Shown here: piece by piece, positions 1 through 58,111 of the stretch
Numbering within the stretch: the stretch's first letter is position 1
How the letters are laid out: the number at the start of each line of letters is the position of its first letter
Assembly (NCBI GenBank): GCA_038496445.1
Contig: JALMLS010000278.1
Span: 1-64,000, forward strand
Length of the DNA stretch: 64,000 bases
DNA from: Trichosphaerium sp. ATCC 40318
Lineage: Eukaryota > Protista > Tubulinea
Reading direction: 5' to 3'
Notes under the pieces: model-generated
The model's database searches: none
What the model saw: only the letters and a program-made list of their open reading frames with translations
Told to the model about the DNA's origin: nothing
Made by a program: the position numbers and the translations under genes

Positions 1-703
1 GTTTTAATAGCTTACTCTCGCTTTAGAAATAGAGCTGTGCATTTGGGAGCAACTGTTGTTGATGACAGAGGTGGCAGCCTCAACATAGATCAAATGTTGA
101 ATATGGGTAATGAGCGACTAATGGCTGACTGGCAACCTATGGATGTTGACGGAGCACAGCCGATTGTAAGTATCCCTTGATGGTTTTTTGCTTTTGTTTT
201 TGTTGTTGCATTATTAATCTTTCTAGGAATCTTTTGCAGCCAAGCAGGGCTACAGTGAAATGACAAAAGCCTTGGAGACTCAAGCGTCAACGGCATACCA
301 CCTTTCAGAGAGTGACGATGAAGATATGGACACTGAAGTAGGAACTTTTGAAAGGCAAAAGCCTGATGTGCCAATGGTTGGTTCCAGTAGACGAAAAGCA
401 CCAGCGTACATGGCAAACAACCCACAACACGGGCAACAAGGAAGGTACAATGCAAAAGAAGCAAGGAAACGTCAGCGACAAGCCCAAAACAGTGCAATGC
501 GTGACTTTACGGGTGGTGATGATGAAGAGTACAACTTTGGTGGAGATTTCTTTGGTGCTAATGTACACATCCTTTTCTTTTTGTTGTTGTAAAAGAAAAA
601 TTACTGATTGTACCTCGTAGCAACAACAAGTGGCGCCAATGCAACAAATACAACGGCAACAACAGGACAATACCACAGTTACAATGGATGACATTGCATT
701 TAG
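1..703 (+). CDS. 3' part of a nucleostemin/GNL3-like GTPase gene (acidic C-terminus), running into the duplicated block
   Basis: Spliced exons (~32-166, 227-561, 620-703) give ...DWQPMDVDG...SESDDEDMDTE...DFTGGDDEEYNFGGDFF...TMDDIAF. The DDEEYNF motif resembles the GNL3/Nug1 tail. The GNL3 N-terminal half lies at 3321-5195. Confidence 0.5.
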
Positions 704-1777
704 GATTAACGTTATTGTTAGATCACCCAATCCTGTAGTGGAACTCTCTGAGGTGGCAAAAGATCCCAATTGGCTCTGTTCTGGAAGAAAGCAGTGTTTG
801 GTAGAGATTTACGTGGTTGCATTTCACCAAAAGCACAGCCATATCAAGTGACTACAAACACTATGAACTTATAAACCCAGACGAGTCAAAAATAAATGTA
901 CTCTATACAGAGTTTGCTGCCTTCGTTAAATCTAATATGGGACTATCTAACAATGTAATCGATGACGATGGGAAAATAAACGTCACGTTTGTATCACGTG
1001 ACAAAGCAAAGCGAAGAAAGTTAGCAAACGAAAAGGAAATTATTGAATACCTACATCGAGAGAAGATGTTAGGGTACAGAGTATAGCACTTGAAGAGCAT
1101 AGCTTGAAGAACAAGTAAGCTGTAGGACAACATACTTGGTTTATTAAGTTACTTTAGATATCTATAATGCATAACACAAACGTATTGGTTGGAATGCATG
1201 GAGCTGGATTAGTTAATCTCATATTTATGAGCCGTGGTTCTGTTGTCATTGAAATGTTTCCATTCAACTTCAAACGCATTAGTTTCGAAACACTTGCAGC
1301 ATACACAGGTTACTTTCATGTTTAATTCAACCTGATACTGACTATACAATTCCAGGGATGCACTACATCTCGTGGGTGAACAAGGTAACGTTGTTGTGAT
1401 ATCACTACTGCTTAACAAACATAATAGTGTCCACTACACACAACGGTTAATACGAATACTGCCATGATCTCATTAAACAGCATATCGATCCTACAAAGGC
1501 AACTTGTTCATCTGATCGTTTTATTGAACGCATATACAATGTTCCTACAAATCAGACGTTTGTGCCTCAGCTCCACAACATCCTTCAGTTTTACTCACAA
1601 CAAAAGCTTGCTCGCAGACCCGTACCTGTTATGGCACGTGATAGACACTGTTTTAGGCAAGTTTCCTTCGTTGTTTTTCTTTTGCCTAATGGCAATCTCA
1701 GGGATCAAAATACAATCATAAGCTTGGATGAATTTAAACTGCTGTTTAACTTTGCTGTTGAATCTCATAACACATAA
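704..1777 (+). pseudogene. 5'-truncated, frameshifted copy of the GT61 glycosyltransferase
   Basis: Same exons as 7188-8266, but with single-base losses (gatcccaat vs gatcccaaat, cgtggttg vs cgtgggttg, ctacatcg vs ctacaatcg). Confidence 0.75.
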
Positions 1778-1974
1778 TAAATAATTGAGCTGCAACTCCT
1801 TTGATCCTTACAAGTGGAATACGCCTCTTTAAATATCTAGCCTAAAATGTAATACCTGGTATGGCACTACAGTTCGTGGAGCTGTATTAGCTCTTCCCAG
1901 AATCCTTGGCAAAGATTCAAGTGTTACGAAAATTAGTTTTTTTTTGTAAAATTGGTCTAGACTGTTAAAGTACA

Positions 1975-3323
1975 ATGAGCGCTACAGCAGCTGAGAAAGA
2001 ACTCGCAGTAAGCTTTGCCAAGGCCGTCACGCGCCTAACGGATGAAGTATGTTTTACAAACTCCCACTTGTGTTTATTAATAGTGGTGTGATGTTAACTG
2101 GTGCGAGCAGGCGTCAAAGGGTGTTGTTTGTGAAAGCCACGCGATTTTGCCAATTGATAAAGACTTGTACGTGTTTTAGCATCAAAATGCATTACGTGAC
2201 ATTGTTTAAGGGTTCATGGCGTATTTACAAAAAATGTACGTTATTCTCCATCCTACAACGAAACAATGCAAAGACAATATGTTAGTTTCAACCTGCCTTA
2301 TCACCAGTGGGTCAATTTTGGCGCGTAGTTAAAAAAGAGGTTTATTCAGACCCAAGCATCCACAAACACCGTTAACTGGGTGGCTACAAAGGTGTGTGGC
2401 GTTTGGATCGTATTGTACACCAACCTTTTCATCTAGGGCTGAGCGGCGTCCAATTTCGTGATTTGAAGGATGATGAAGGTATTTTTTCGAACATTTTACA
2501 TAAACAACCACTTTATTCACAACTTGTGGTAGAGGCTAAAGCGGTGAGAAATGAGTTGGCTGCGTTGGAAGAGCACGTGACCACGTCAGTGGATGCAATT
2601 ATCAAAGATTTACAAACCGCAGCAACCAAACTGGCTCATCAAATCGCCAATAGGAGGTGACTTGTAAAATGCTTTGGTATTTAATCTTTATAAATTTTCA
2701 GGATGCCAGTCGTGAAACGGAAAGCTGATGCGCTTGCTACAGAACAAGCTCTTGCTAATATGCTGAGAGATGACGAGCCACCAAAGAAAAAGCGCAAAAC
2801 GGCACGTGAATTGCAAATTTGCTTTATTCTTCACATTTTGGAAAAGGTATTTAATCTACTTCCTAAAGGGTACCGAGAAAGCAACACCGAAAAAAGCCGG
2901 GTACACTGTAGAGCAACTACAAACTTTACCAAAGCACAAACTCAAGGAACTATGTGAAAAAGAAAACGTGCCGAGAACAGGCAACAATTTCACCCTCATA
3001 AAACGGCTTCTCACTCCTGACGGTACTTTCAAGTAATGTGGTGTGAGCGTGACTTATTTTTCTTTTAGCGTATCGTAAAGGCCGCAAAAAGATAACATTA
3101 GCAACAATGCAAAAAAATTTAGTAAAATTAGGATTGACTGCACAAGAGGCCAAAGCTTCCAGTAGGTGCTGCATGGCTGCCATTTCTCGTGGTTTTATAC
3201 CATTACCAACATGTCTTGACGACGAGGTACCTGGCAGGTTTGGACGTGTGATGAGTGCCAAGAGTTGGTTACAACGACTTATCGTGACACTTAAACAGCT
3301 GATTATGCAAGTTGATTATGAAG
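1975..3323 (+). pseudogene. 3'-truncated copy of the SAP/Cys-rich gene
   Basis: Matches 8464-9821 and breaks inside the Cys-rich domain at the junction with GNL3. Confidence 0.75.
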
Positions 3324-6571: not shown

Positions 6572-8266
6572 TTGATGTTAGTTACTTTAATGTTAGTGGC
6601 TGCACCACGCCGTCTGTCAGCTCTACCATCCAATACCGTGCGAGTAACGCCTGTAAATAAATTATTAAAAGCGAGTTGTAAACTTTGCCTTGTAGAGAAC
6701 GTGCACTTCTTCCACAACCTCTACTTTTTGCGCAAAGACGGCTACAAGAAATATTCGCCTGATGCAGACGAAGATACACATGTGGAAAAAGTTCTGAGAA
6801 TAGCTCCTAAACGCGAAGGAGTACGTGCGGAGCTGGCAGAATTGAATGGTACGCTACACACTTGGAACACTGCTCCTTCTTATAGTTGATGTCACGTAGT
6901 GTTAGATACAAAGTACGCTGTGCAAACTGGTGTTGCTGTTTGTTTCCAACGGTCTCCTTTTTATGGCAATATATTTCACCATTTCGTTGACGATATGGTT
7001 ATTCTGTATTCTATTTTAAAGAGAGGTGCTCAACTTACGTTTAGTATTGTACTAAACCAGCACAGTTGGTGGATTGCAACAGAATCATATTTATTTTTTG
7101 GACAAGGTTTCTGGCAAGAAAGTAGAAGCATACCGACCAATGCTTGAATCTTATAAGTTGCTGTACATTAACTGTCATTGCATTTAGGATTAACGTTATT
7201 GTTAGATCACCCAATCCTGTAGTGGAACTCTCTGAGGTGGCAAAAGATCCCAAATTGGCTCTGTTCTGGAAGAAAGCAGTGTTTGGTAGAGATTTACGTG
7301 GGTTGCATTTCACCAAAAGCACAGCCATATCAAGTGACTACAAACACTATGAACTTATAAACCCAGACGAGTCAAAAATAAATGTACTCTATACAGAGTT
7401 TGCTGCCTTCGTTAAATCTAATATGGGACTATCTAACAATGTAATCGATGACGATGGGAAAATAAACGTCACGTTTGTATCACGTGCCAAAGCAAAGCGA
7501 AGAAAGTTAGCAAACGAAAAGGAAATTATTGAATACCTACAATCGAGAGAAGATGTTAGGGTACAGAGTATAGCACTTGAAGAGCATAGCTTGGAAGAAC
7601 AAGTAAGCTGTAGGACAACATACTTGGTTTATTAAGTTACTTTAGATATCTATAATGCATAACACAAACGTATTGGTTGGAATGCATGGAGCTGGATTAG
7701 TTAATCTCATATTTATGAGCCGTGGTTCTGTTGTCATTGAAATGTTTCCATTCAACTTCAAACGCATTAGTTTCGAAACACTTGCAGCATACACAGGTTA
7801 CTTTCATGTTTAATTCAAGCTGATACTGACTTTTCAATTCCAGGGATGCACTACATCTCGTGGGTGAACAAGGTAACATTGTTGTGATATCACTACTGCT
7901 TAACAAACATAATAGTGTCCACTACACACAACGGTTAATACGAAATACTGCCATGATCTCATAAAACAGCATATCGATCCTACAAAGGCAACTTGTTCAT
8001 CTGATCGTTTTATTGAACGCATATACAATGTTCCTACAAATCAGACGTTTGTGCCTCAGCTCCACAACATCCTCCAGTTTTACTCACAACAAAAGCTTGC
8101 TCGCAGACCCGTACCTGTTATGGCACGTGATAGACACTGTTTTAGGCAAGTTTCCTTCGTTGTTTTTCTTTTGCCTAATGGCAATCTCAGGGATCAAAAT
8201 ACAATCATAAGCTTGGATGAATTTAAACTGCTGTTTAACTTTGCTGTTGAATCTCATAACACATAA
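6572..8266 (+). CDS. Glycosyltransferase family 61 (EOGT/DUF563-like); start uncertain
   Basis: NIFHHFVDD, VTFVSR..RRKLANE.EII, SLEEQISIMHNTNVLVGMHGAGLVNLIFM..SVVIEMFP. Confidence 0.85.
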
Positions 8267-9821
8267 TAAATAATTGAGCTGCAACTCCTTTGATCCTTAC
8301 AAGTGGAATACGCCTCTTTAAATATCTAGCCTAAAATGTAATACCTGGTATGGCACTACAGTTCGTGGAGCTGTATTAGCTCTTCCCAGAATCCTTGGCA
8401 AAGATTCAAGTGTTACGAAAATTAGTTTTTTTTTGTAAAATTGGTCTAGACTGTTAAAGTACAATGAGCGCTACAGCAGCTGAGAAAGAACTCGCAGTAA
8501 GCTTTGCCAAGGCCGTCACGCGCCTAACGGATGAAGTATGTTTTACAAACTCCCACTTGTGTTTATTAATAGTGGTGTGATGTTAACTGGTGCGAGCAGG
8601 CGTCAAAGGGTGTTGTTTGTGAAAGCCACGCGATTTTGCCAATTGATAAAGACTTGTACGTGTTTTAGCATCAAAATGCATTACGTGACATTGTTTAAGG
8701 GTTCATGGCGTATTTACAAAAAATGTACGTTATTCTCCATCCTACAACGAAACAATGCAAAGACCAATATGTTAGTTTCAACCTGCCTTATCACCAGTGG
8801 GTCAATTTTGGCGCGTAGTTAAAAAAGAGGTTTATTCAGACCCAAGCATCCACAAACACCGTAAAACAGGTGGCTACAAAGGTGTGTGGCGTTTGGATCG
8901 TATTGTACACCAACCTTTTCATCTAGGGCTGAGCGGCGTCCAATTTCGTGATTTGAAGGATGATGAAGGTATTTTTTCGAACATTTTACATAAACAAACC
9001 ACTTTATTCACAACTTGTGATAGAGGCTAAAGCGGTGAGAAATGAGTTGGCTGCGTTGGAAGAGCACGTGACCACGTCAGTGGATGCAATTATCAAAGAT
9101 TTACAAACCGCAGCAGCCAAACTGGCTCATCAAATCGCCAATAGGAGGTGACTTGTAAAATGATTTGGTATTTAATCTTTATAAATTTTCAGGATGCCAG
9201 TCGTGAAACGGAAAGCTGATGCGCTTGCTACAGAACAAGCTCTTGCTAATATGCTGAGAGATGACGAGCCACCAAAAAAAAAGCGCAAAACGGCACGTGA
9301 ATTGCAAATTTTGCTTTATTCTTCACATTTTGGAAAAGGTATTTAATCTACTTCCTAAAGGGTACCGAGAAAGCAACACCGAAAAAAGCCGGGTACACTG
9401 TAGAGCAACTACAAAACTTTACCAAAGCACAACTCAAGGAACTATGTGAAAAAGAAAACGTGCCGAGAACAGGCAACAATTTCACCCTCATAAAACGGCT
9501 TCTCACTCCTGACGGTACTTTCAAGTAATGTGGTGTGAGCGTGACTTATTTTTCTTTTAGCGTATCGTAAAGGCCGCAAAAAGATAACATTAGCAACAAT
9601 GCAAAAAAATTTAGTAAAATTAGGATTAACTGCACAAGAGGCCAAAGCTTCCAGTAGGTGCTGCATGGCTGCTATTTCTCGTGGTTTTATACCATTACCA
9701 ACATGTCTTGACGACGAGGTACCTGGCAAGGTTTGGACGTGTGATGAGTGCCAAGAGTTGGTTACAACGACTTATCGTGCCCTCTTGAAACAGCCTGATT
9801 ATGCAGGGTATGATTATGAAG
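7176..9821 (+). repeat. Direct duplication copy 2 (source copy in intact gene context)
   Basis: Matches 692-3323. Flanked by the rest of the GT61 gene and the rest of the SAP gene. Confidence 0.95.
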
Positions 9822-25249: not shown

Positions 25250-25339
25250 CCTAGAACAGCTATGGCGATGTTGGTACTGTGCTCCAACCTGCTTTCAAAA
25301 GCACGTGTTTCATTCAAGAAAAGTCTTTTTTTTTCTACC

Positions 25340-25483
25340 TGGTAAATACGGTGTTGACGATATCAAGGACAATCATACTGACAGGGCTGCATCTGCATAC
25401 ATTTCTTATCGTGATGCTTGGGTACCTGTTGTGTTGGCAGGAGGAGATAAGAAAAAGTTTGGTGAATAAACACAACTCAAAGC
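25340..25483 (+). pseudogene. GST gene fragment (third copy)
   Basis: GKYGVDDIKDNHTDRAASAYISYRDAWVPVVLAGGDKKKFGE* is nearly identical to 30928-31078, ending in a small deletion and a stop. Confidence 0.92.
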
Positions 25484-25529
25484 TGTTAACGTATTACAAT
25501 TTATTGTCAGAATAAGACATAGTGGGTTC

Positions 25530-27764
<2,235 letters not shown>

Positions 27765-28184
27765 ATTTTTCGTTATTGCCACGTCATGGTTGCGCTGTTG
27801 GCAAAAAATTCAATTAATAAAAAGCAAATAACAAGTGAAATTTCTAATAATCCGCTATTTACAGTTATAGCACACGTGCTGAATATTTCCTTTTTTTGAC
27901 CACCTGTGCGCACTAAAAGATAGCTCTACTACAGGTTATGCAAACAGACACTTATTGGCTTGTTCGAGTGTCAATGGGTTAATAATAATAGCGAGCTGAC
28001 TGAAATTACGGAGATGCCAACCGCACGTGTGACTAACGCCCTTGCACGTACGAACTCCACTTTTTTACATGAAGTATCAAGCGTTACAATATTTTTGTGG
28101 GTTTTGATACGCAAAAGCTTGGGTCGTTGTAGTTCTGATTCACATTGTTACTTTTTTTAAGTGGAAGCTCGGATCACCGTAAAT

Positions 28185-28279
28185 CTGTCAGGGTTTACCC
28201 TGTCAGTCAGGGCTGAACCCTGAGATAACCTAAATCCGACCCAGGGTAACCCTGTCTACCAGGGAGGTATCCCCTGATA
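28185..28279 (+). promoter_or_regulatory. Array of four CAGGG-N(3-7)-CCCTG palindromes upstream of the metallothionein
   Basis: 28189-28202 (N4), 28208-28222 (N5), 28242-28254 (N3), 28260-28276 (N7). The array ends ~45 bp before the ATG. Confidence 0.75.
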
Positions 28280-28320
28280 GAATTAAAATATCAACAAACT
28301 AAACGAACTAACAACACATC

Positions 28321-28701
28321 ATGTCCTCAGACGCTTCAGCAGAAATCAAACAACAACAATCTTCTTGCAGCGATTGCAAAGAATCTTGTAAGTCGTGCAC
28401 CTACAAGACGGACTGTTCTAACTGCACCAACTGTAAAGGCCAAGGTACGTATACGCTCGTTCTACATCAAGAGACATGATCTAGCTTCTCCGCTTGAACC
28501 TTAAGTTTTCAAATGCTAATTTTAGTTCCTAGATAACGCAGATTGTTGTTCAAAAGACGCTGACGGCAAAGCAACGTGCAGCTGCGATTGTTGTAAAAAG
28601 GTACGAAGAGACAAGACCTGTTTTTTTTTTGTTCATAAAATTAACTCCGCGTGTAGTGTGTCTGTGATACATGTGATACAAGCAAGTGCGGATGTAAATA
28701 A
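28321..28701 (+). CDS. Metallothionein (78 aa, 18 Cys), 3 exons
   Basis: Exons 28321-28444, 28533-28600, 28657-28701 give MSSDASAEIKQQQSSCSDCKESCKSCTYKTDCSNCTNCKGQDNADCCSKDADGKATCSCDCCKKCVCDTCDTSKCGCK. CxxC/CxC/CC motifs, Ser/Lys-rich, one aromatic residue. Confidence 0.88.
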
Positions 28702-28898
28702 AGATATACTAAACCCATCTATCGCCATTGTACAAATCTGTAATCAAGAATAAACATTAATTAAACAAATTGTCAGATGTAATCTTTTAGTTAGATGTCT
28801 TTTACTGTGATTCCTACATCGCAACCGAACGTAATGTAGACTGTAAAGAACAACGCCAGAAGGGGGAACAATTCGATACGATTTATTGTTAACAAAGC

Positions 28899-30158
28899 TC
28901 ACTTGGCCCAGTTAATCTCACCTGAGTTTTTCTTCGTATTCCAAGTGACAGATGTTCCTGAAGCGAATTTACGAGTGTAAACATCTCCTTCAACTGTCGC
29001 TGGACCGAGTGGATTTCCAAGAGGCTTTTCAAATTGAGGATCCCATCCATTACAGCCCAGAATACATCCTTCTTCAACCGCAAGTAAGAACATAATTATA
29101 TCTCTTTGAGTACAAATAGACTTTGGTGATGGTGATACATCCGAATGGTGATCCACAATCTAGAATTTTTAGTTCATTTTGATTATACATTAACGTGTCC
29201 TCGTACCATGAAGTATACGTAAATTGCACCACTTTTGAAAGCGTTTTGGACGTTTTCTATAATTGCAGATGGTTCTCCTTTAGCACGTGCCTGGACCGTT
29301 GTATTGAAAAAAATAAAACCTTCCTTTCCGAATAGCTCATAAATACCATCCATCAAGAGTTCCTTTCCTTCGTTGTACGCACTCGCAGTAGCTTCTGGTA
29401 TCTCTCCACATGATAGGTCCCATGTTCTACCATCGTTATGTTCGCACAACTGCCTAAAATTCACGTCAGACGTCATCAAACGTTTGTAAAAAAAAAAGAA
29501 GAAGCAAAAGAAAAGAAGCTGGAAAGTTCAGAAGAAGATTTCACCATGCCAAGACATACCAAATGTTTGAAGACTTGTTGTATTGTGCCCGAATGGTAAC
29601 CTTGTCAGGGAAAACACCATCGACTTTTTTATCAGCCAAAAACTTTAACCACATATCACGTGTCTTTTTCTTCCCTTGATCGAATGCGTTTATGCCAGGC
29701 ATACCGTTGTCATTTTTTATGGCCAACAATTTACCGTCAGTCTTAACGACATCTGCACCAATAGCCAATGCCTGTTCGTGTAAACCTATGAATCCAAAGT
29801 CGTACAACGTGTTTAAATAGAAAACAACACATAATTTTGGGTTAATCGCCCTTGCTGCGTTAATGGTAGCCTCCTGGTATTTCTCGGCACCGCAAGACGC
29901 TTGACAAGGCAGTGGCGGCTTTTTTGTCGCATTGGCAAGACATTCGTCCCAACAAGGACCTTCCCACTTTTCTATCACTATCATACGCATTTTAGCGAGC
30001 ATTTCGAGGCTTTCTTGAGATCTGTGGCTCGAGTTCTGACCACCGAAATAACCAACAGGTATCGTGGATAAAGAAACATCTGGCGGCACTATACACACCA
30101 CGTGGATGGCGAATAAAGCGACAAGTATCCCAGCAATTCGGTTTGTTTGTTGTAACAT
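28899..30158 (-). CDS. Secreted putative glycoside hydrolase, GHL15 (PF14885)/GH168-like
   Basis: Signal peptide; IVIEKW, A.AINP..VVFYLN, DGVFPD, C-terminal FEKPLGNPLGPA..VYTRKFASGTSVTW..GEINW; 2 introns. Confidence 0.78.
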
Positions 30159-30559
30159 TTGTGTTAACTAAGAAAAGTAGTTCGAATTTATTTGATGTAT
30201 TTTGCTGGTTTTAAATGTGATTATTCATACCAATTACCGTCTCAACGCACGTGGTTTACTGGGTTGTATTAAAACTATACAATTAAAACATTATTTAGAG
30301 CTGTACGACGTAAGATGACATTGTACCGCTTTAAAAGACTGACTTGGGTCTACTTCTAAATAAGGAAAGTGACCTGAGGAGAATCCAAATACCAGCAACT
30401 CAAACTAGAATAATAGAATAGAGCTGAGCATAGCATGAATACTTCTTATAACGTGGTTAGTACACATTAGTAATGGTTTACCGAGGAAGATTTCTAAATG
30501 GAGAATCGAAACATAAAATAGTTGACACTTCATCAACTCAAAATCAAAAAACAACAACA

Positions 30560-31329
30560 ATGACAACAGCAAATGATAAACTCGGATGTACTCCAAATCT
30601 CACTTACATTCAACTTGGTAAACTTGGAGGACGTGGTGGTCCAGTCAGGTAGTACAACCTAGTACAACAACCCAACTAAAAACTTGTTTAGATTCTTTAT
30701 GTTATTGAACGGTATCAAGTTTACTGAAGAGATTATTGACTTTCCAGGCGATTGGCCTGAAAAAAAGAAAGAGATAATCAACAGTGGATTAAATCCTTTT
30801 GGCGGTGTTCCAATATTGCACTTGAATGGTAAGGTAACTCTTTCGTGTTTAAACAATCTGAAAAAAATGATGAAGGTCTTAACATGTGCGAACATGTACC
30901 AATGATAAGATACATGGCAAAGAAACTTGGTAAATACGGTGTTGACGATATCAAGGACTATCACACTGACAGGGCTGCATCTGCATACATTTCTTATCGT
31001 GATGCTTGGGTACCTGTTGTGTTGGCAGGAGGAGATAAGAAAAAGTTTGGTGAATATCAAAAAACACAACTCAAAGCATTTGACACCATTTTGGGTCAAA
31101 CTGAGGGTGATTACTTCTCAGGTACAAACATACATTGGTTATTATTCAGTGTTAACGCTCTACTACAGGCAAAGAAGTTTCTTTTGCTGACATCTTGGTT
31201 GCATCAATGATAAGAGATGTGTCTTTGACTGTTCCTGATTCTCTTGACCTCAAACCTGTACCTCGTTTGAGCAAGATGTACAATGCTGTTATTTCTCTTG
31301 ATCCAATCAAGCAATGGATTGACGCCTAA
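30560..31329 (+). CDS. Glutathione S-transferase (Tyr-type, sigma-like)
   Basis: LTYIQLGKLGGRGGPVRFFM..NPFGGVPIL..EHVPMIRYMAKKLG..YFSGKEVSFADIL; 3 introns. Confidence 0.92.
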
Positions 31330-31462
31330 ATGCCTCTCCACAAATAAAGTATCAGATTTCAAATAGACTTGTAAGTTAGATGTACTTATGAAGCGCTTGT
31401 CTGTACTACAAAATTAATAGCATATTTACATGTATGTACATTTTATTGGTCAAGAGAGAGTT

Positions 31463-40310: not shown

Positions 40311-40383
40311 AAGCCAAGAGTTTTAATTTAACACCTACTTGTGAACAATAAATTGTCATACTCTGTTAGCAATGTAGTGACAT

Positions 40384-41163
40384 TTAGGCGTCAATCCATT
40401 GCTTGATTGGATCAAGAGAAATAACAGCATTGTACATCTTGCTCAAACGAGGTACAGGTTTGAGGTCGAGAGAATCAGGAACAGTCAAAGACACGTCTCT
40501 TATCATTGATGCAACCAAGACGTCAGCAAAAGAAACTTCTTTGCCTGTAGTAGAGCGTTAACACTGAACAATAACCAATGTATGTTGTACCTGAGAAGTA
40601 ATCACCCTCAGTTTGACCCAAAATAGTGTCAAATGCTTTGAGTTGTGTTTTTTGATATTCACCAAACTTTTGCTTATCTCCTCCTGCCAACACAACAGGT
40701 ACCCAAGCATCACGATAAGAAATGTATGCAGATGCAGCCCTATCAGTGTGATAGTCCTTGATATCGTCAACACCATATTTACCAAGTTTCTTTGCCATGT
40801 ATCTTATCATTGGTACATGTTCACACATGTTAAGACCTCATCATTTTCTTAGATTGTTTAAACACGAAAGAGTTATCCTTACCATTCAAGTGCAATATTG
40901 GAACACCGCCAAAAGGATTTAATCCACTGTTGATTATCTCTTTCTTTTTTTCAGGCCAATCGCCTGGAAAGTCAATAATCTCTTCAGTAAACTTGATACC
41001 GTTCAATAACATGAAGAATCTAAACAGATTTTTAGCTTGAGTCGTTGTACTTATTCAAGATTAGGTTGTACTACCTGACTGGACCACCACGTCCTCCAAG
41101 TTTACCAAGTTGAATGTAAGTGAGCTTTGGAGTACATCCGAGTTTATCATTTGCTGTTGTCAT
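40384..41163 (-). CDS. Glutathione S-transferase, second copy
   Basis: Near-identical protein to 30560-31329 with the same intron positions. Confidence 0.92.
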
Positions 41164-41598
41164 TGTTGTTGTTTTTGATTTTGATTTGTGATGAAACAAG
41201 CAACAATTAAGATTTGATTCTCCATTTAGAAATCATTCCTCGGTAAACCACTAATGTGTACTAACCATATTAAGAATATTCGTGCTATGCTCAGCTCTAT
41301 TTTTATTATTCTAGTTTGAGTTGCTGGTATTTGGATTCTCCTCGGGTCACTTTCCTTATTTAGAAGTATACCCACGTGATTTTTAAACCGGTAAGATGTC
41401 ATGTTACGTGTAAAATAAGCCTATTGTGACGTACAGCTCTAAATGGTGCTTCAATTATCGCGTTTTAATACAACCCAGGTAAAAGAGCACGTATTTTTTG
41501 TACGACAGTGGTCTGAATAGCCATAATACACAGCTTTTATTTGCTGGTTTTAAGTATCGTCCCTTCAAAGTAAGTTCTCTAGTTCTTAGTTAACACAA

Positions 41599-42892
41599 AT
41601 GTTACAACAAACAAACCGAATTGCTGGTATTCTTGTCGCTTTATTCGTCATTCACGTGGTGTGTATAGTGCCGCCAGATGTTTCTTTATCCACAATACCT
41701 GTTGGTTACTTCGGTGGTCAGAACTCGAGCCACAGATCTCAAGAAAGCCTCGAAATGCTCGCCAAAATGCGTATGATAGTGATAGAAAAGTGGGAAGGAC
41801 CTTGTTGGGACGAATGTCTTGCCAATGCGACAAAAAAGCCGCCACTGCCTTGTCAAGCGTCTTGTGGTGCCGACAAATACCAAGAGAGCACTATTAATGC
41901 AGCAAGGGCAATTAACCCAAAATTATGTGTTGTTTTCTATTTAAACACGTTGTACGACTTTGGATTCATAAGTTTACACGAACAGGCATTGGCTATTGGT
42001 GCAGATGTCGTTAAGACTGATGGTAAATTGTTGGCCATAAAAAATGACAACGGTATGCCTGGCATAAACGCATTCGATCAAGGGAAGAAAAAGACACGTG
42101 ATATGTGGTTAAAGTTTTTGGCTGATAAAAAAGTCGATGGTGTTTTCCCTGACAAGGTTACCATTCGGGCACAATACAACAAGTCTTCAAAATTTTGGTA
42201 TGTGTTGTGGCGTGGTGAAATCTTCTTCTGAACTTTCCAGGGTTCTTTTCTTTTGCTTCTTCTTTTTATTTTTTTCAACATGTGGTACCATCCTTGTTGA
42301 CGTCAGAATCTTAGGCAGCTCTGCGAATACAACAGTGGTAAGACATGGGATCTATCATGTGGAGAGATATCGGAAGCTGATGCGAGTGCGTACAACGAAG
42401 GAAAGGAACTCTTGATGGATGGTATTTATGAGCTATTCGGAAAGGAAGGTTTTATTTTTCACAATACAACAGCGTATGTACATCCTGGTGCCCGCTCTCC
42501 ATCTGCGATCATAGAAAATGTACAAAACGCTTTCAAAAGTGGTGCAACTTACGTATACTTTATGGTACGCGAGCACTCACAAACCACATGTTAACACTCT
42601 TGCTCAAAATCTGAACTAAAAAAATAAATAGACAGCAGATCACCATACAGATGCACCGCCAACAACGAAGTCTATTTGTACTCAAAGAGAAATAATTATA
42701 TTCTTACTTGCGGTTGAAGAAGGATGTATTCTGGGCTGTAACGGATGGGATCCTCAATTTGAAAAGCCTCTTGGAAATCCACTTGGACCAGCGACAGTTG
42801 AAGGAGATGTTTACACTCGTAAATTCGCTTCAGGAACATCTGTCACCTGGAATACGAAAACAGACTCAGGTGACATTAACTGGGCCAACTAA
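41599..42892 (+). CDS. GHL15/GH168-like glycoside hydrolase, second copy
   Basis: Paralog of 28899-30158; intact, with clustered substitutions in the C-terminal half. Confidence 0.78.
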
Positions 42893-43070
42893 GTTTTGTT
42901 CGCAATAAAATAGTTCTCTTCTTTCCAATTTACATTTACGTTCAATTTACCAATCACTGAAGATAGTTAACTAGCAGATTACTTCAGGCATTTTGCTGCA
43001 CGTGTAGTTTTTAATGTTTATTCTTGATTACAGATTGTACAATGGCGAAGATGGGTTTAGTAGTGCATCT

Positions 43071-43454
43071 TTATTTACATCCGCACTTGCTTGTATCACA
43101 TGTATCACAGACACACTACGCGCGGAGTTAATTTGAAGAACCAAAAAAAAAACAGTCTCTTTTCTCTTCGCACCTTTTTACAACAATCGCAGCTGCATGT
43201 TGCTTTGCCGTCAGCGTCTTTTGAACAACAATCTGCGTTATCTAGGAACTAAAATTAGCATTTGAAAACCTTAAAGTTCAAGCGGAGAAGCTAGATCATG
43301 TCTCTTGATGTAGAACGAGTGTATACGTACCTTGGCCTTTACAGTTGGTGCAGTTAGAACAGTCCGTCTTGTAGGTGCACGACTTACAAGATTCTTTGCA
43401 ATCGCTGCAAGAAGATTGTTGTTGTTTGATTTCTGCTGAAGCGTCTGAGGACAT
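43071..43454 (-). CDS. Metallothionein, second copy (identical protein)
   Basis: Same 3 exons; one synonymous change seen (ACG/ACA); the introns differ more. Confidence 0.88.
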
Positions 43455-43498
43455 GATGTGTTGTTTGTTTGTTTAGTTTGTTGATATTTTAATTCTAT

Positions 43499-43692
43499 CA
43501 GGGGATACCTCCCTGGTAGACAGGGTTACCCTGGGTCGGATTTAGGATATCTCAGGGTTCAGCCCTGACTGACAGGGTAAACCCTGACAGATTTACGGTG
43601 CTCCAAGCTTCCAAAAAGAGTAACAATGTGATTGTAGGATTTGTCAGGGTCCCTCCCTGGTCGACAGGGAAACCCTGACAGAGTGAGCCCTG
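43499..43692 (-). promoter_or_regulatory. Expanded CAGGG-Nx-CCCTG palindrome array (6 perfect + 1 imperfect)
   Basis: Four shared units at 43499-43587, plus 43645-43659 (N5), 43665-43677 (N3) and CAGAG-tgag-CCCTG at 43679-43692. Confidence 0.75.
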
Positions 43693-44557
43693 CTTTTGCG
43701 TATCAAAGCCCATAGATTACGCTTTGATCCCTTCTTTCATGCTTTGCGTGCCGGAAGGTACTTTGTACGTACACGAAACAACTTCACAAAGGTGATAGGA
43801 AAAGCCTGAAATCGCGAAGGTTTTCGTCAGCTCCTACGCTAATTACGCACATGTGTTATGCTGCAAAGTTTCAAATGAATCTAGTAGAACTCTACGTACG
43901 TTCGTTACAATTGACACGTGTTGGGTTGGCAAATCGGAAACAAATATGCTCAAAAGCATTAGTGATGCTATGAAAACTGTTCGACTTGGAATGACTTTAG
44001 GCAAAACGCCTAAACCGAAAAAACCCATTTTGTTTGGAATTGTCTTTGGTGAGGCGCTTGTTGTATCACACCCATTGCTGCCATAGGATCTTGAACTAAC
44101 TCATTTTGGACATTGGATTTCGCATTAGTTTTTTGTTTTATTTGTCAAGCTTGTGAGACGTCTCAATTTTCCTTCACGTAGCGCATTATGTTTACAACCG
44201 TACTTGTACTGTTTAGATTAGCAGGTATTGTAGATCAGGGTAAAGCTGAAAGCTGGAATCAATTTGCTATTGATAAAACAACAATGTTACCTTTAAAGTG
44301 GAATAATGGATGGAAAAAAAAGTACAAGGTAAACGTGATAGATACATTTTTTCTACAACAGCTGTTGTAATGAAATAAACACTAAATGTACTACACTTAA
44401 CAAATACGTATATAGAGCAGTACTATCATAGTCTATTGTATCAAGATCTGTTAGTTTGCGTAAACAAACTGAGTTGTAAGATACGCAGTGAAAAACATAT
44501 TGTTTTACAGATGTTTATTTTACTTCTTTTTTACAACCTTAGTGGTATAACTACCCC

Positions 44558-57238: not shown

Positions 57239-58111
57239 TCAATGTTGCTTTTCGCAAAAATGAATCGCCATCGGACCATTTCCTGTGGACTGATACCATA
57301 TTGTAAATATCGTACAACTCTTTCTGTCCCACAAAGGCCACTCGCGTTGTAAGTATCTGTATAAACAATGTTCATCACGTGGTACAAAGTACTTGAACGT
57401 AAATATGCGGCTTGCTTTGCAACAACGAACTGTTTTGTTCGTATCTCTAAATAAACATTTGAAGCAGTAGCTCTTGTTATTCAATGAACAACATCCATCT
57501 TGCTCGCCGCATTCTGTACATAGTAGTTTGATAACTTGTTTCTCTGATAAATACTCTTGTCTTTCAATGTATTGACTAGTGCACTCTCTACAAAGTCTCA
57601 TAGCATCAACCACTGTAGACACGAAAGCAGAGCATATGTGGCATTTCATACCATAAGGTAGACTAACACTGTCAAGATGTGCGAGTTTGTTCCACTTTTC
57701 TGCACTGCCAGGTTTGTAAGGACAGCGTTGATGCTGTGATTTATGAACGCGACAAGCTTTATCAAAAGTAATCATGGCATCCTGGAACGAAAGCTTTTGA
57801 CCATGGAACTGCTCGTTGTATCTTGAATAAACGAATACATATCTGTTATCCCTGAGAATCGGTACAAGCATTGGTAGACGTTTAGGGCATAAAATAGAGA
57901 GGTAGTGAAGGTTTGGAAGCAAGTTATCATCATCACCAATAAAGTCATTTACATACTGTAGGCAATCTTTACTTGTTAATTTAAGCTGTATAATACTCCA
58001 AATGTTTGTACGGAGAAGTATATCGAGTATTATAACAAAGGCATCGTAATAAAGTGTTGAGAGCGTTACCACATCTTCTTCAAACTCTGGCTGTTTTTTA
58101 TTAGAATTCAT
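57239..58111 (-). CDS. Intronless hypothetical protein, F-box-like N-terminus and multiple CxxC motifs
   Basis: 290-aa uninterrupted ORF; YDAFVIILDIL..QLKLTSK; CHIC, CREC, CTEC, CFKC. Confidence 0.6.
   Translation of the reverse strand: MNSNKKQPEFEEDVVTLSTLYYDAFVIILDILLRTNIWSIIQLKLTSKDCLQYVNDFIGDDDNLLPNLHYLSILCPKRLPMLVPILRDNRYVFVYSRYNEQFHGQKLSFQDAMITFDKACRVHKSQHQRCPYKPGSAEKWNKLAHLDSVSLPYGMKCHICSAFVSTVVDAMRLCRECTSQYIERQEYLSEKQVIKLLCTECGEQDGCCSLNNKSYCFKCLFRDTNKTVRCCKASRIFTFKYFVPRDEHCLYRYLQREWPLWDRKSCTIFTIWYQSTGNGPMAIHFCEKQH

Follow-up and report, generated by a model that had tools for sequence, protein, structure and literature searches.

The stretch of Trichosphaerium DNA analysed here (64,000 nucleotides, called the window below) is eukaryotic, comes from an intron-rich protist and has few long open reading frames. 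It carries two copies of a small gene for a cysteine-rich, metallothionein-like protein, at the outer ends of the two arms of an inverted duplication, and directly upstream of each copy lies a dense array of CAGGG-Nx-CCCTG palindromes (Table 1). The first copy is made of three exons (28321-28444, 28533-28600 and 28657-28701) separated by GT..AG introns of 88 and 56 nt. Both splice joints are present in RNA contigs from four public runs belonging to two studies, which confirms the three-exon structure and demonstrates that the gene is expressed. The 3'-UTR indels of an abundant RNA contig from run X1 agree with arm 2, showing that the second copy, which has the longer array of three modules, is expressed as well. 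A diverged paralogue of the gene is also expressed and is visible in run X4.

Table 1. Features of the two metallothionein-like promoters and their surroundings (positions in the window)
Feature	Position	Strand	Remarks
Divergently transcribed Hsp70 gene, 5' part	27299..27792	-	upstream of arm 1; a spliced RNA contig extends to 27792
Remainder of promoter common to both copies	28098..28188	+	inter-arm homology begins at 28098
Unit 1, CAGGG-TTTA-CCCTG	28189..28202		left palindrome of module A; core of 22-bp near-palindrome 28185-28206
Unit 2, CAGGG-CTGAA-CCCTG	28208..28222		right palindrome of module A; CCCTG-TCAGT-CAGGG from unit 1
Unit 3, CAGGG-TAA-CCCTG	28242..28254		left palindrome of module B
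Unit 4, CAGGG-AGGTATC-CCCTG	28260..28276		right palindrome of module B; N5 = TCTAC to unit 3
AT-rich TATA-like stretch, ATAGAATTAAAATATC	28277..28292	+	between array and mRNA 5' ends; function inferred
Approximate mRNA 5' end	28303..28313	+	RNA contig starts and adaptor position
Metallothionein-like gene, copy 1 (arm 1)	28321..28701	+	three exons, 78 aa with 18 Cys; spliced RNA contigs
Metallothionein-like gene, copy 2 (arm 2)	43074..43454	-	ATG at 43454
Arm-2 modules B and A (four palindromes)	43499..43586	-	one mismatch to arm 1, in inter-module spacer
Module C, arm 2 only, CAGGG-TTT-CCCTG-TCGAC-CAGGG-AGGGA-CCCTG, with adjoining decayed unit CAGGGctcaCTCTG	43645..43692	-

The spliced gene encodes a product of 78 residues, 18 of which are cysteines (23%), with a single tyrosine and no histidine, phenylalanine or tryptophan. 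Metallothioneins are recognized as small proteins with 15 to 30% cysteine, arranged in CxC, CC and CxxC motifs, and with few aromatic residues, and by their belonging to a curated family; the composition of the 78-aa product falls within this description. It is by composition only that the gene is a candidate metallothionein gene, and metal binding by its product is putative. Pfam holds no family for this protein, a word search with the 78-aa sequence as query returned zero matches, and exact look-ups of the exon-1 ORF, of the spliced protein and of two neighbouring ORFs retrieved no record. When the exon-1 ORF was used to query 1.84 billion representatives, just two matches came back; both were spurious and were discarded, one consisting of repeated Cys-bearing domains and the other of a junk repeat. 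The literature on metallothionein in Naegleria, Physarum or Amoebozoa likewise yielded nothing relevant. On these searches, the 78-aa Cys-rich product is a lineage-restricted metallothionein-like protein.

The two arms of the inverted duplication extend over approximately 28098-31340 and 40373-43712 and are separated by a spacer of about 9 kb. The duplicated cassette, which comprises the metallothionein-like gene, a GHL15-like hydrolase gene and further genes, is 75-99% identical in blocks. Identity reaches 98% over 28162-28509, an interval that takes in the array and core promoter as well as exon 1 and a portion of intron 1, and the array itself differs between the arms by one mismatch, located in the spacer between modules. 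A first-pass annotation of this DNA had rightly described the array as almost base-identical in the second arm. It had added that the flanks diverge, which is true upstream only, since on the other side the arms match equally well through the core promoter and exon 1 into intron 1. This deprives the inter-arm identity of any value as an argument for conservation of the array: exon 1 and intron 1 being equally identical, what makes the arrays nearly identical is a recent duplication, or gene conversion, and not constraint. For the same reason of recent duplication, the two arms count as about one observation. What does differ between them is the number of modules, two in arm 1 and three in arm 2. 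A third, partial copy of the cassette is found at 25337-25921, beside the Hsp70 gene. Elsewhere in the window, a direct duplication (680-3114 and 7164-9606, with a spacing of about 6.49 kb) is 94-100% identical in blocks, and a 290-aa ORF on the minus strand (57242-58111) belongs to no Pfam family; its nearest Atlas clusters are F-box-like, some of them from giant viruses (Nucleocytoviricota), and are to be taken as feature-based leads only.

The position of the array relative to the transcript was deduced from the RNA contigs. Those of the four runs begin at 28306-28313, and the sequencing adaptor in a contig of a paralogue sits 10 nt ahead of the nucleotide corresponding to 28313, which together place the mRNA start near 28303-28306. 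Since all these contigs start downstream of the array, the latter is untranscribed and occupies the proximal promoter, from about -30 to -117, directly adjoining the AT-rich TATA-like stretch. As inter-arm homology ends ~90 bp upstream of module A, the promoter common to both copies is short, just ~208 bp in arm 1 to ~245 bp in arm 2, and 88 to 194 bp of it are taken up by the array; arm 1 lacks module C and has about 22 bp of diverged sequence in its place. The DNA upstream of arm 2 differs from that upstream of arm 1, and the Hsp70 gene is absent there. The array is therefore associated with the metallothionein-like gene, and not with Hsp70.

Four perfect CAGGG-Nx-CCCTG inverted repeats, with spacers of 4, 5, 3 and 7 nt in that order, make up the array of arm 1 (28189-28276). 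Sequence inspection and pattern searches thus bear out the first-pass description of four GC-rich inverted repeats, with N(3,4,5,7) spacers, packed into ~90 bp directly upstream of the gene; the GC content is 54% in the array and 38% in the whole window. The first unit is indeed a 22-bp near-palindrome, with a single T/T mismatch, while the proposed extended half-site, WCAGGGT, stands as a tendency and not as an invariant feature: 7 of 13 sites have a T after GGG and 9 of 13 an A or T before the C, a weak preference. In the 64-kb window, 10 perfect units are observed where dinucleotide-preserving shuffles predict 0.09, and all 10 fall inside the two metallothionein-like promoters (28189-28276 and, on the opposite strand, 43499-43677). 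When one mismatch is allowed, 11 units are found, every one of them in the arrays, compared to about 3.2 expected anywhere from the shuffles; the sole addition is the decayed unit of arm 2 (43679-43692), and the remainder of the window contains no CAGGG-Nx-CCCTG unit, even with one mismatch. The array has 8 half-sites in 88 bp; outside the arrays they number 0.58 per kb and nowhere form another cluster of at least 3 per 100 bp. The motif cluster is real, far beyond chance, and within the window it is exclusive to the two copies of the metallothionein-like gene.

The array is built of modules of about 35 bp. Each begins with a tight palindrome (IR3/4, spacer of 3-4 nt), continues through CCCTGTCnnnCAGGG, where an everted CCCTG-TCnnn-CAGGG pair is held at a constant spacing, and ends with a looser palindrome (IR5/7, spacer of 5-7 nt). 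The everted spacing is N5 in 3/3 modules. Arm 1 consists of modules A and B, which start at a distance of 53 bp from each other, and arm 2 of modules C, A and B plus the decayed unit adjoining C, giving six perfect palindromes and one decayed unit over 43499-43692. Throughout, the half-sites alternate in orientation at intervals of ~10 bp, roughly one helical turn; in arm 1 the steps between their centres are 9, 10, 10, 24, 8, 10 and 12 bp, that is, 8-12 bp within modules. When modules A, B and C are compared, 20/20 half-site positions are identical, whereas elsewhere 36-58% of positions differ and lengths vary too; the comparison is partly circular in that the modules are defined by their half-sites. 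Despite this partial circularity, it shows modules that have diverged, after duplication, everywhere except in the 5-mers.

This combination of half-sites that are invariant between modules and spacers that differ in both sequence and length favours sequence-specific protein binding over hairpins, and we infer that a protein binds the CAGGG half-sites. We consider that, with a probability of roughly 0.58, the array serves the metallothionein-like gene as a cis-regulatory element, in the form of a promoter cluster of candidate protein-binding half-sites. The protein would be a sequence-specific DNA-binding factor reading the 5-bp core CAGGG (weakly CAGGGT). It would likely bind cooperatively, as a dimer or a higher oligomer, along one face of the helix, and the number of modules would set the strength of the promoter. 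An oligomer lying on one helix face is suggested by the fixed everted N5, by the ~10-bp phasing and by the variable spacers of the palindromes. A rigid dimer seated on each palindrome seems to fit less well, as inverted-repeat spacing that varies from 3 to 7 bp would be unusual for such a dimer. The claim initially made for the array, that it is the site of a metal-sensing factor, thus keeps part of its basis, namely a non-random cluster of promoter motifs whose invariant half-sites and variable spacers are typical of the sites of sequence-specific factors, and loses the argument from conservation.

Metal-dependent transcription is understood in animals (MTF-1), in fungi (copper-fist factors, Zap1) and in plants and green algae (SBP, bZIP19/23), and partly in ciliates (MTCM1); on amoeboid protists, nothing was found in the literature searched. 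Both upstream regions were scanned for the consensus sequences of the MTF-1 MRE, ARE, AP-1/MTCM1, HSE, GATA, CRR1 GTAC, Ace1, Mac1, Zap1 ZRE and plant ZDRE. None of the scanned metal-response consensus sequences is present in the promoter common to both copies. Of the remaining motifs scanned, just one occurs there, a GATA-like TGATAG at -46 (28275-28280) that overlaps the last half-site. The MTF-1 MRE, TGCRCNC, is absent from arm 2, from the array and from the common promoter; the single match is a palindromic MRE-like GTGCGCAC of arm 1 (27906-27913, -414), situated outside the duplicated segment towards Hsp70. All GTAC cores of the CRR1/SBP type lie outside the array and the common promoter, at -273 in arm 1 and from -307 to -445 in arm 2. 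By their usual habit, MREs are found as several TGCRCNC copies in the proximal promoter, and CRR1 GTAC cores close to the regulated start site. Copper-fist sites (Ace1/Cup2 TCN4-6GCTG; Mac1 TTTGCKCR) have no match in either promoter, nor have the Zap1 ZRE ACCYYNAAGGT and the bZIP19/23 ZDRE RTGTCGACAY in either upstream region, the TGTCGAC inside module C being merely variable spacer. The AP-1 site TGASTCA is absent from both promoters; of the looser TGANTCA, arm 1 has one instance (-185) and arm 2 none. Neither an ARE nor a heat-shock element is found in the common promoter; a single HSE-type GAANNTTC is located at -484, in arm 1 only, beside Hsp70. On the consensus strings scanned, the CAGGG motif is unlike the known metal-response elements, in agreement with the first-pass annotation. 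Two CACGTG boxes (27873-27878 and 28024-28029) were also noticed in the divergent intergenic region between Hsp70 and the metallothionein-like gene, in arm 1 only and outside the duplicated promoter.

The closest known analogue of the CAGGG array is MTCM1 of Tetrahymena, a lineage-specific motif that was found by sequence alone (PMC1808422). The few hundred bp that precede MTT1, MTT3 and MTT5 contain 2-13 copies of MTCM1, facing either way, and some inverted copies form palindromes. Duplication of ~54-bp modules built the MTCM1 arrays, the motif itself having changed less than the sequence around it, and MTCM1 is all but missing from the remainder of the Tetrahymena genome (PMC1808422). The CAGGG array follows the same logic, the starts of its modules A and B lying 53 bp apart. 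It differs in that MTCM1 has cross-species and expression support (PMC1808422). It also differs in the motif itself, which in Tetrahymena is GTGTGAATCATGAGT with an AP-1-like TGANTCA core, as against CAGGG here, and with a different core, the factor is probably a different one. A study is said to have proposed bZIP candidates for the Tetrahymena motif; these do not transfer to the present case, given the lack of TGASTCA and the single TGANTCA, confined to arm 1.

Other systems share single features with the array. Like the MREs read by MTF-1 in animals, it consists of multimerised short elements, in both orientations, in a proximal metallothionein promoter, but TGCRCNC is absent from the promoter common to both copies. 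Like heat-shock elements, whose reader, HSF, is oligomeric, it has invariant 5-bp units, in multiples and in strictly alternating orientation. The units of heat-shock elements, however, are contiguous GAA units (nGAAn) with a 5-bp period, whereas here the period is ~10 bp, the spacers are variable and the unit is CAGGG. The upstream activating sequence of yeast CUP1 (Ace1/Cup2, Amt1; GCTG core) also comprises several sites, partly inverted repeats, upstream of a metallothionein gene amplified in copy number, yet neither TCN4GCTG nor TTTGCKCR is present here. Finally, the subterminal transposase-binding repeats of the CACTA/En-Spm type are dense short motifs, direct and inverted, within 100-300 bp; in contrast, the array lies at a core promoter and has no terminal inverted repeats, target duplication or further copies in the window. 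The array thus carries the defining consensus of no known family among those tested. A search of the literature on CAGGG/CCCTG palindromes as binding sites found nothing relevant either.

If the array is indeed a set of binding sites, analogy with these systems tips the balance towards a factor that responds to metals. A more specific proposal, which we put forward tentatively and which could well prove wrong, is that the CAGGG half-sites, alternating at a ~10-bp phase, are the response element of a new metal-sensing transcription factor of an amoeboid protist lineage that would be without MTF-1-type, copper-fist or SBP-type elements at its metallothionein genes. The number of modules (2 or 3) would tune induction, and the element would travel with the gene through its repeated amplification. 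Alternatively, the array could bind a transcription factor without any metal sensing, and serve constitutive high expression or another signal (oxidative, general stress or developmental). Only the kind of gene ties the motif to metals, and in run X1, among runs not known to involve metals, the contig of the metallothionein-like gene has a word depth of ~474 versus 5-10 for its neighbours, a poor measure of expression according to the warning of the tool itself. Nevertheless, the motif is missing from the other stress genes of the cassette (Hsp70, the GST region, the hydrolase) and from every further gene in the window, which argues against a general stress or housekeeping element, and it is well established that multimerised, gene-specific elements of metallothionein promoters are usually metal-responsive (PMC1808422). 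We regard an array unconnected with metals as unlikely, though a serious competitor.

An origin in mobile DNA has to be weighed as well: the array could be a remnant or derivative of a transposon, its half-sites being the subterminal repeats of some family of DNA transposons or MITEs with CAGGG ends, and have no regulatory role, or have been exapted. If it was exapted, this explanation merges with the cis-regulatory one; an array of such origin would illustrate how the end of a transposon is taken over for use as a promoter module. In its density and its mixed orientations the motif recalls the subterminal regions bound by transposases, for example those of En/Spm, each array has CAGGG as its first letters and CCCTG as its last, and the metallothionein-like gene sits in repeatedly duplicated segments. 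Against this, there is no target-site duplication at the borders of the array, the homology between arms extends past the first CAGGG, and within the 64-kb window there is neither a CAGGG...CCCTG pair with extended terminal inverted repeats nor a further copy of the array; the marks of a MITE or DNA transposon (terminal inverted repeats, target-site duplication, dispersed copies) are thus lacking in the window. Moreover, all half-sites are perfectly kept amid diverged spacers, which is unexpected for a decaying relic. On this evidence, a transposon derivation is improbable.

Very improbable is a role for the array as a structural element of DNA or RNA, whether as promoter hairpins or cruciforms, an alternative already raised in the first-pass annotation, or as stem-loops of the 5' leader. 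A stem of 5-6 bp is possible in each unit, and as single-stranded DNA the region folds better than shuffled sequences (z = -3.9), a value that follows trivially from the presence of eight mutually complementary 5-mers. The stems are short and weak (-3.6 to -5.6 kcal/mol, single-stranded), two of the four are no better than shuffles, and the loop of unit 3 would be only 1-3 nt long. Recognition by a protein is favoured by the fact that all 12 perfect pairs are made of the same 5-mer, with no compensatory variation, that the array lies outside the mRNA, and that no Rfam family matches it. Other readings were rejected outright: a tandem repeat (none is detected by TRF), a known RNA family (no match), a G-quadruplex (15-31 nt separate the G3 runs, and complementary C3 runs lie between them) and a telomere-like telobox (some units contain AACCCT, yet the C/G that never varies in CAGGG/CCCTG does not fit a telomeric repeat).

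Independent copies of the array or of its neighbourhood were sought in other data sets. A metagenome scan with the four-half-site module returned 17 loci, all of them unrelated and none beside a Cys-rich ORF; they were dismissed as GC-rich bacterial hairpins or tandem repeats, or as a long perfect palindrome. Relatives of the GHL15-like hydrolase, with ~55-65% identity, were found on a 1.85-Mb ENA contig, a TARA scaffold and a Logan contig, and in none of these three neighbourhoods was there a metallothionein-like ORF or a CAGGG motif. As all searches for independent copies failed, the case rests on one recently duplicated locus. A binding-site array at this promoter would nonetheless be of practical use. 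Its motif is compact, with clear half-sites, and offers a direct handle on the factor, in the form of a 35-bp oligonucleotide for pull-down. The ~210-250 bp upstream of the gene would represent a strong, possibly inducible promoter that could serve as a genetic tool for the organism.

The hydrolase of the cassette has a counterpart in transcript data. A spliced JGI transcript contig (JGI 3300016894, Ga0186627_106696), which as a transcript includes no promoter, is 99% identical to the first exon of the arm-2 hydrolase and 90-95% identical to the later exons; it is either a chimera assembled from paralogues or one more copy. Its 99% identity to the arm-2 exon shows that the species is present in a JGI transcriptome.
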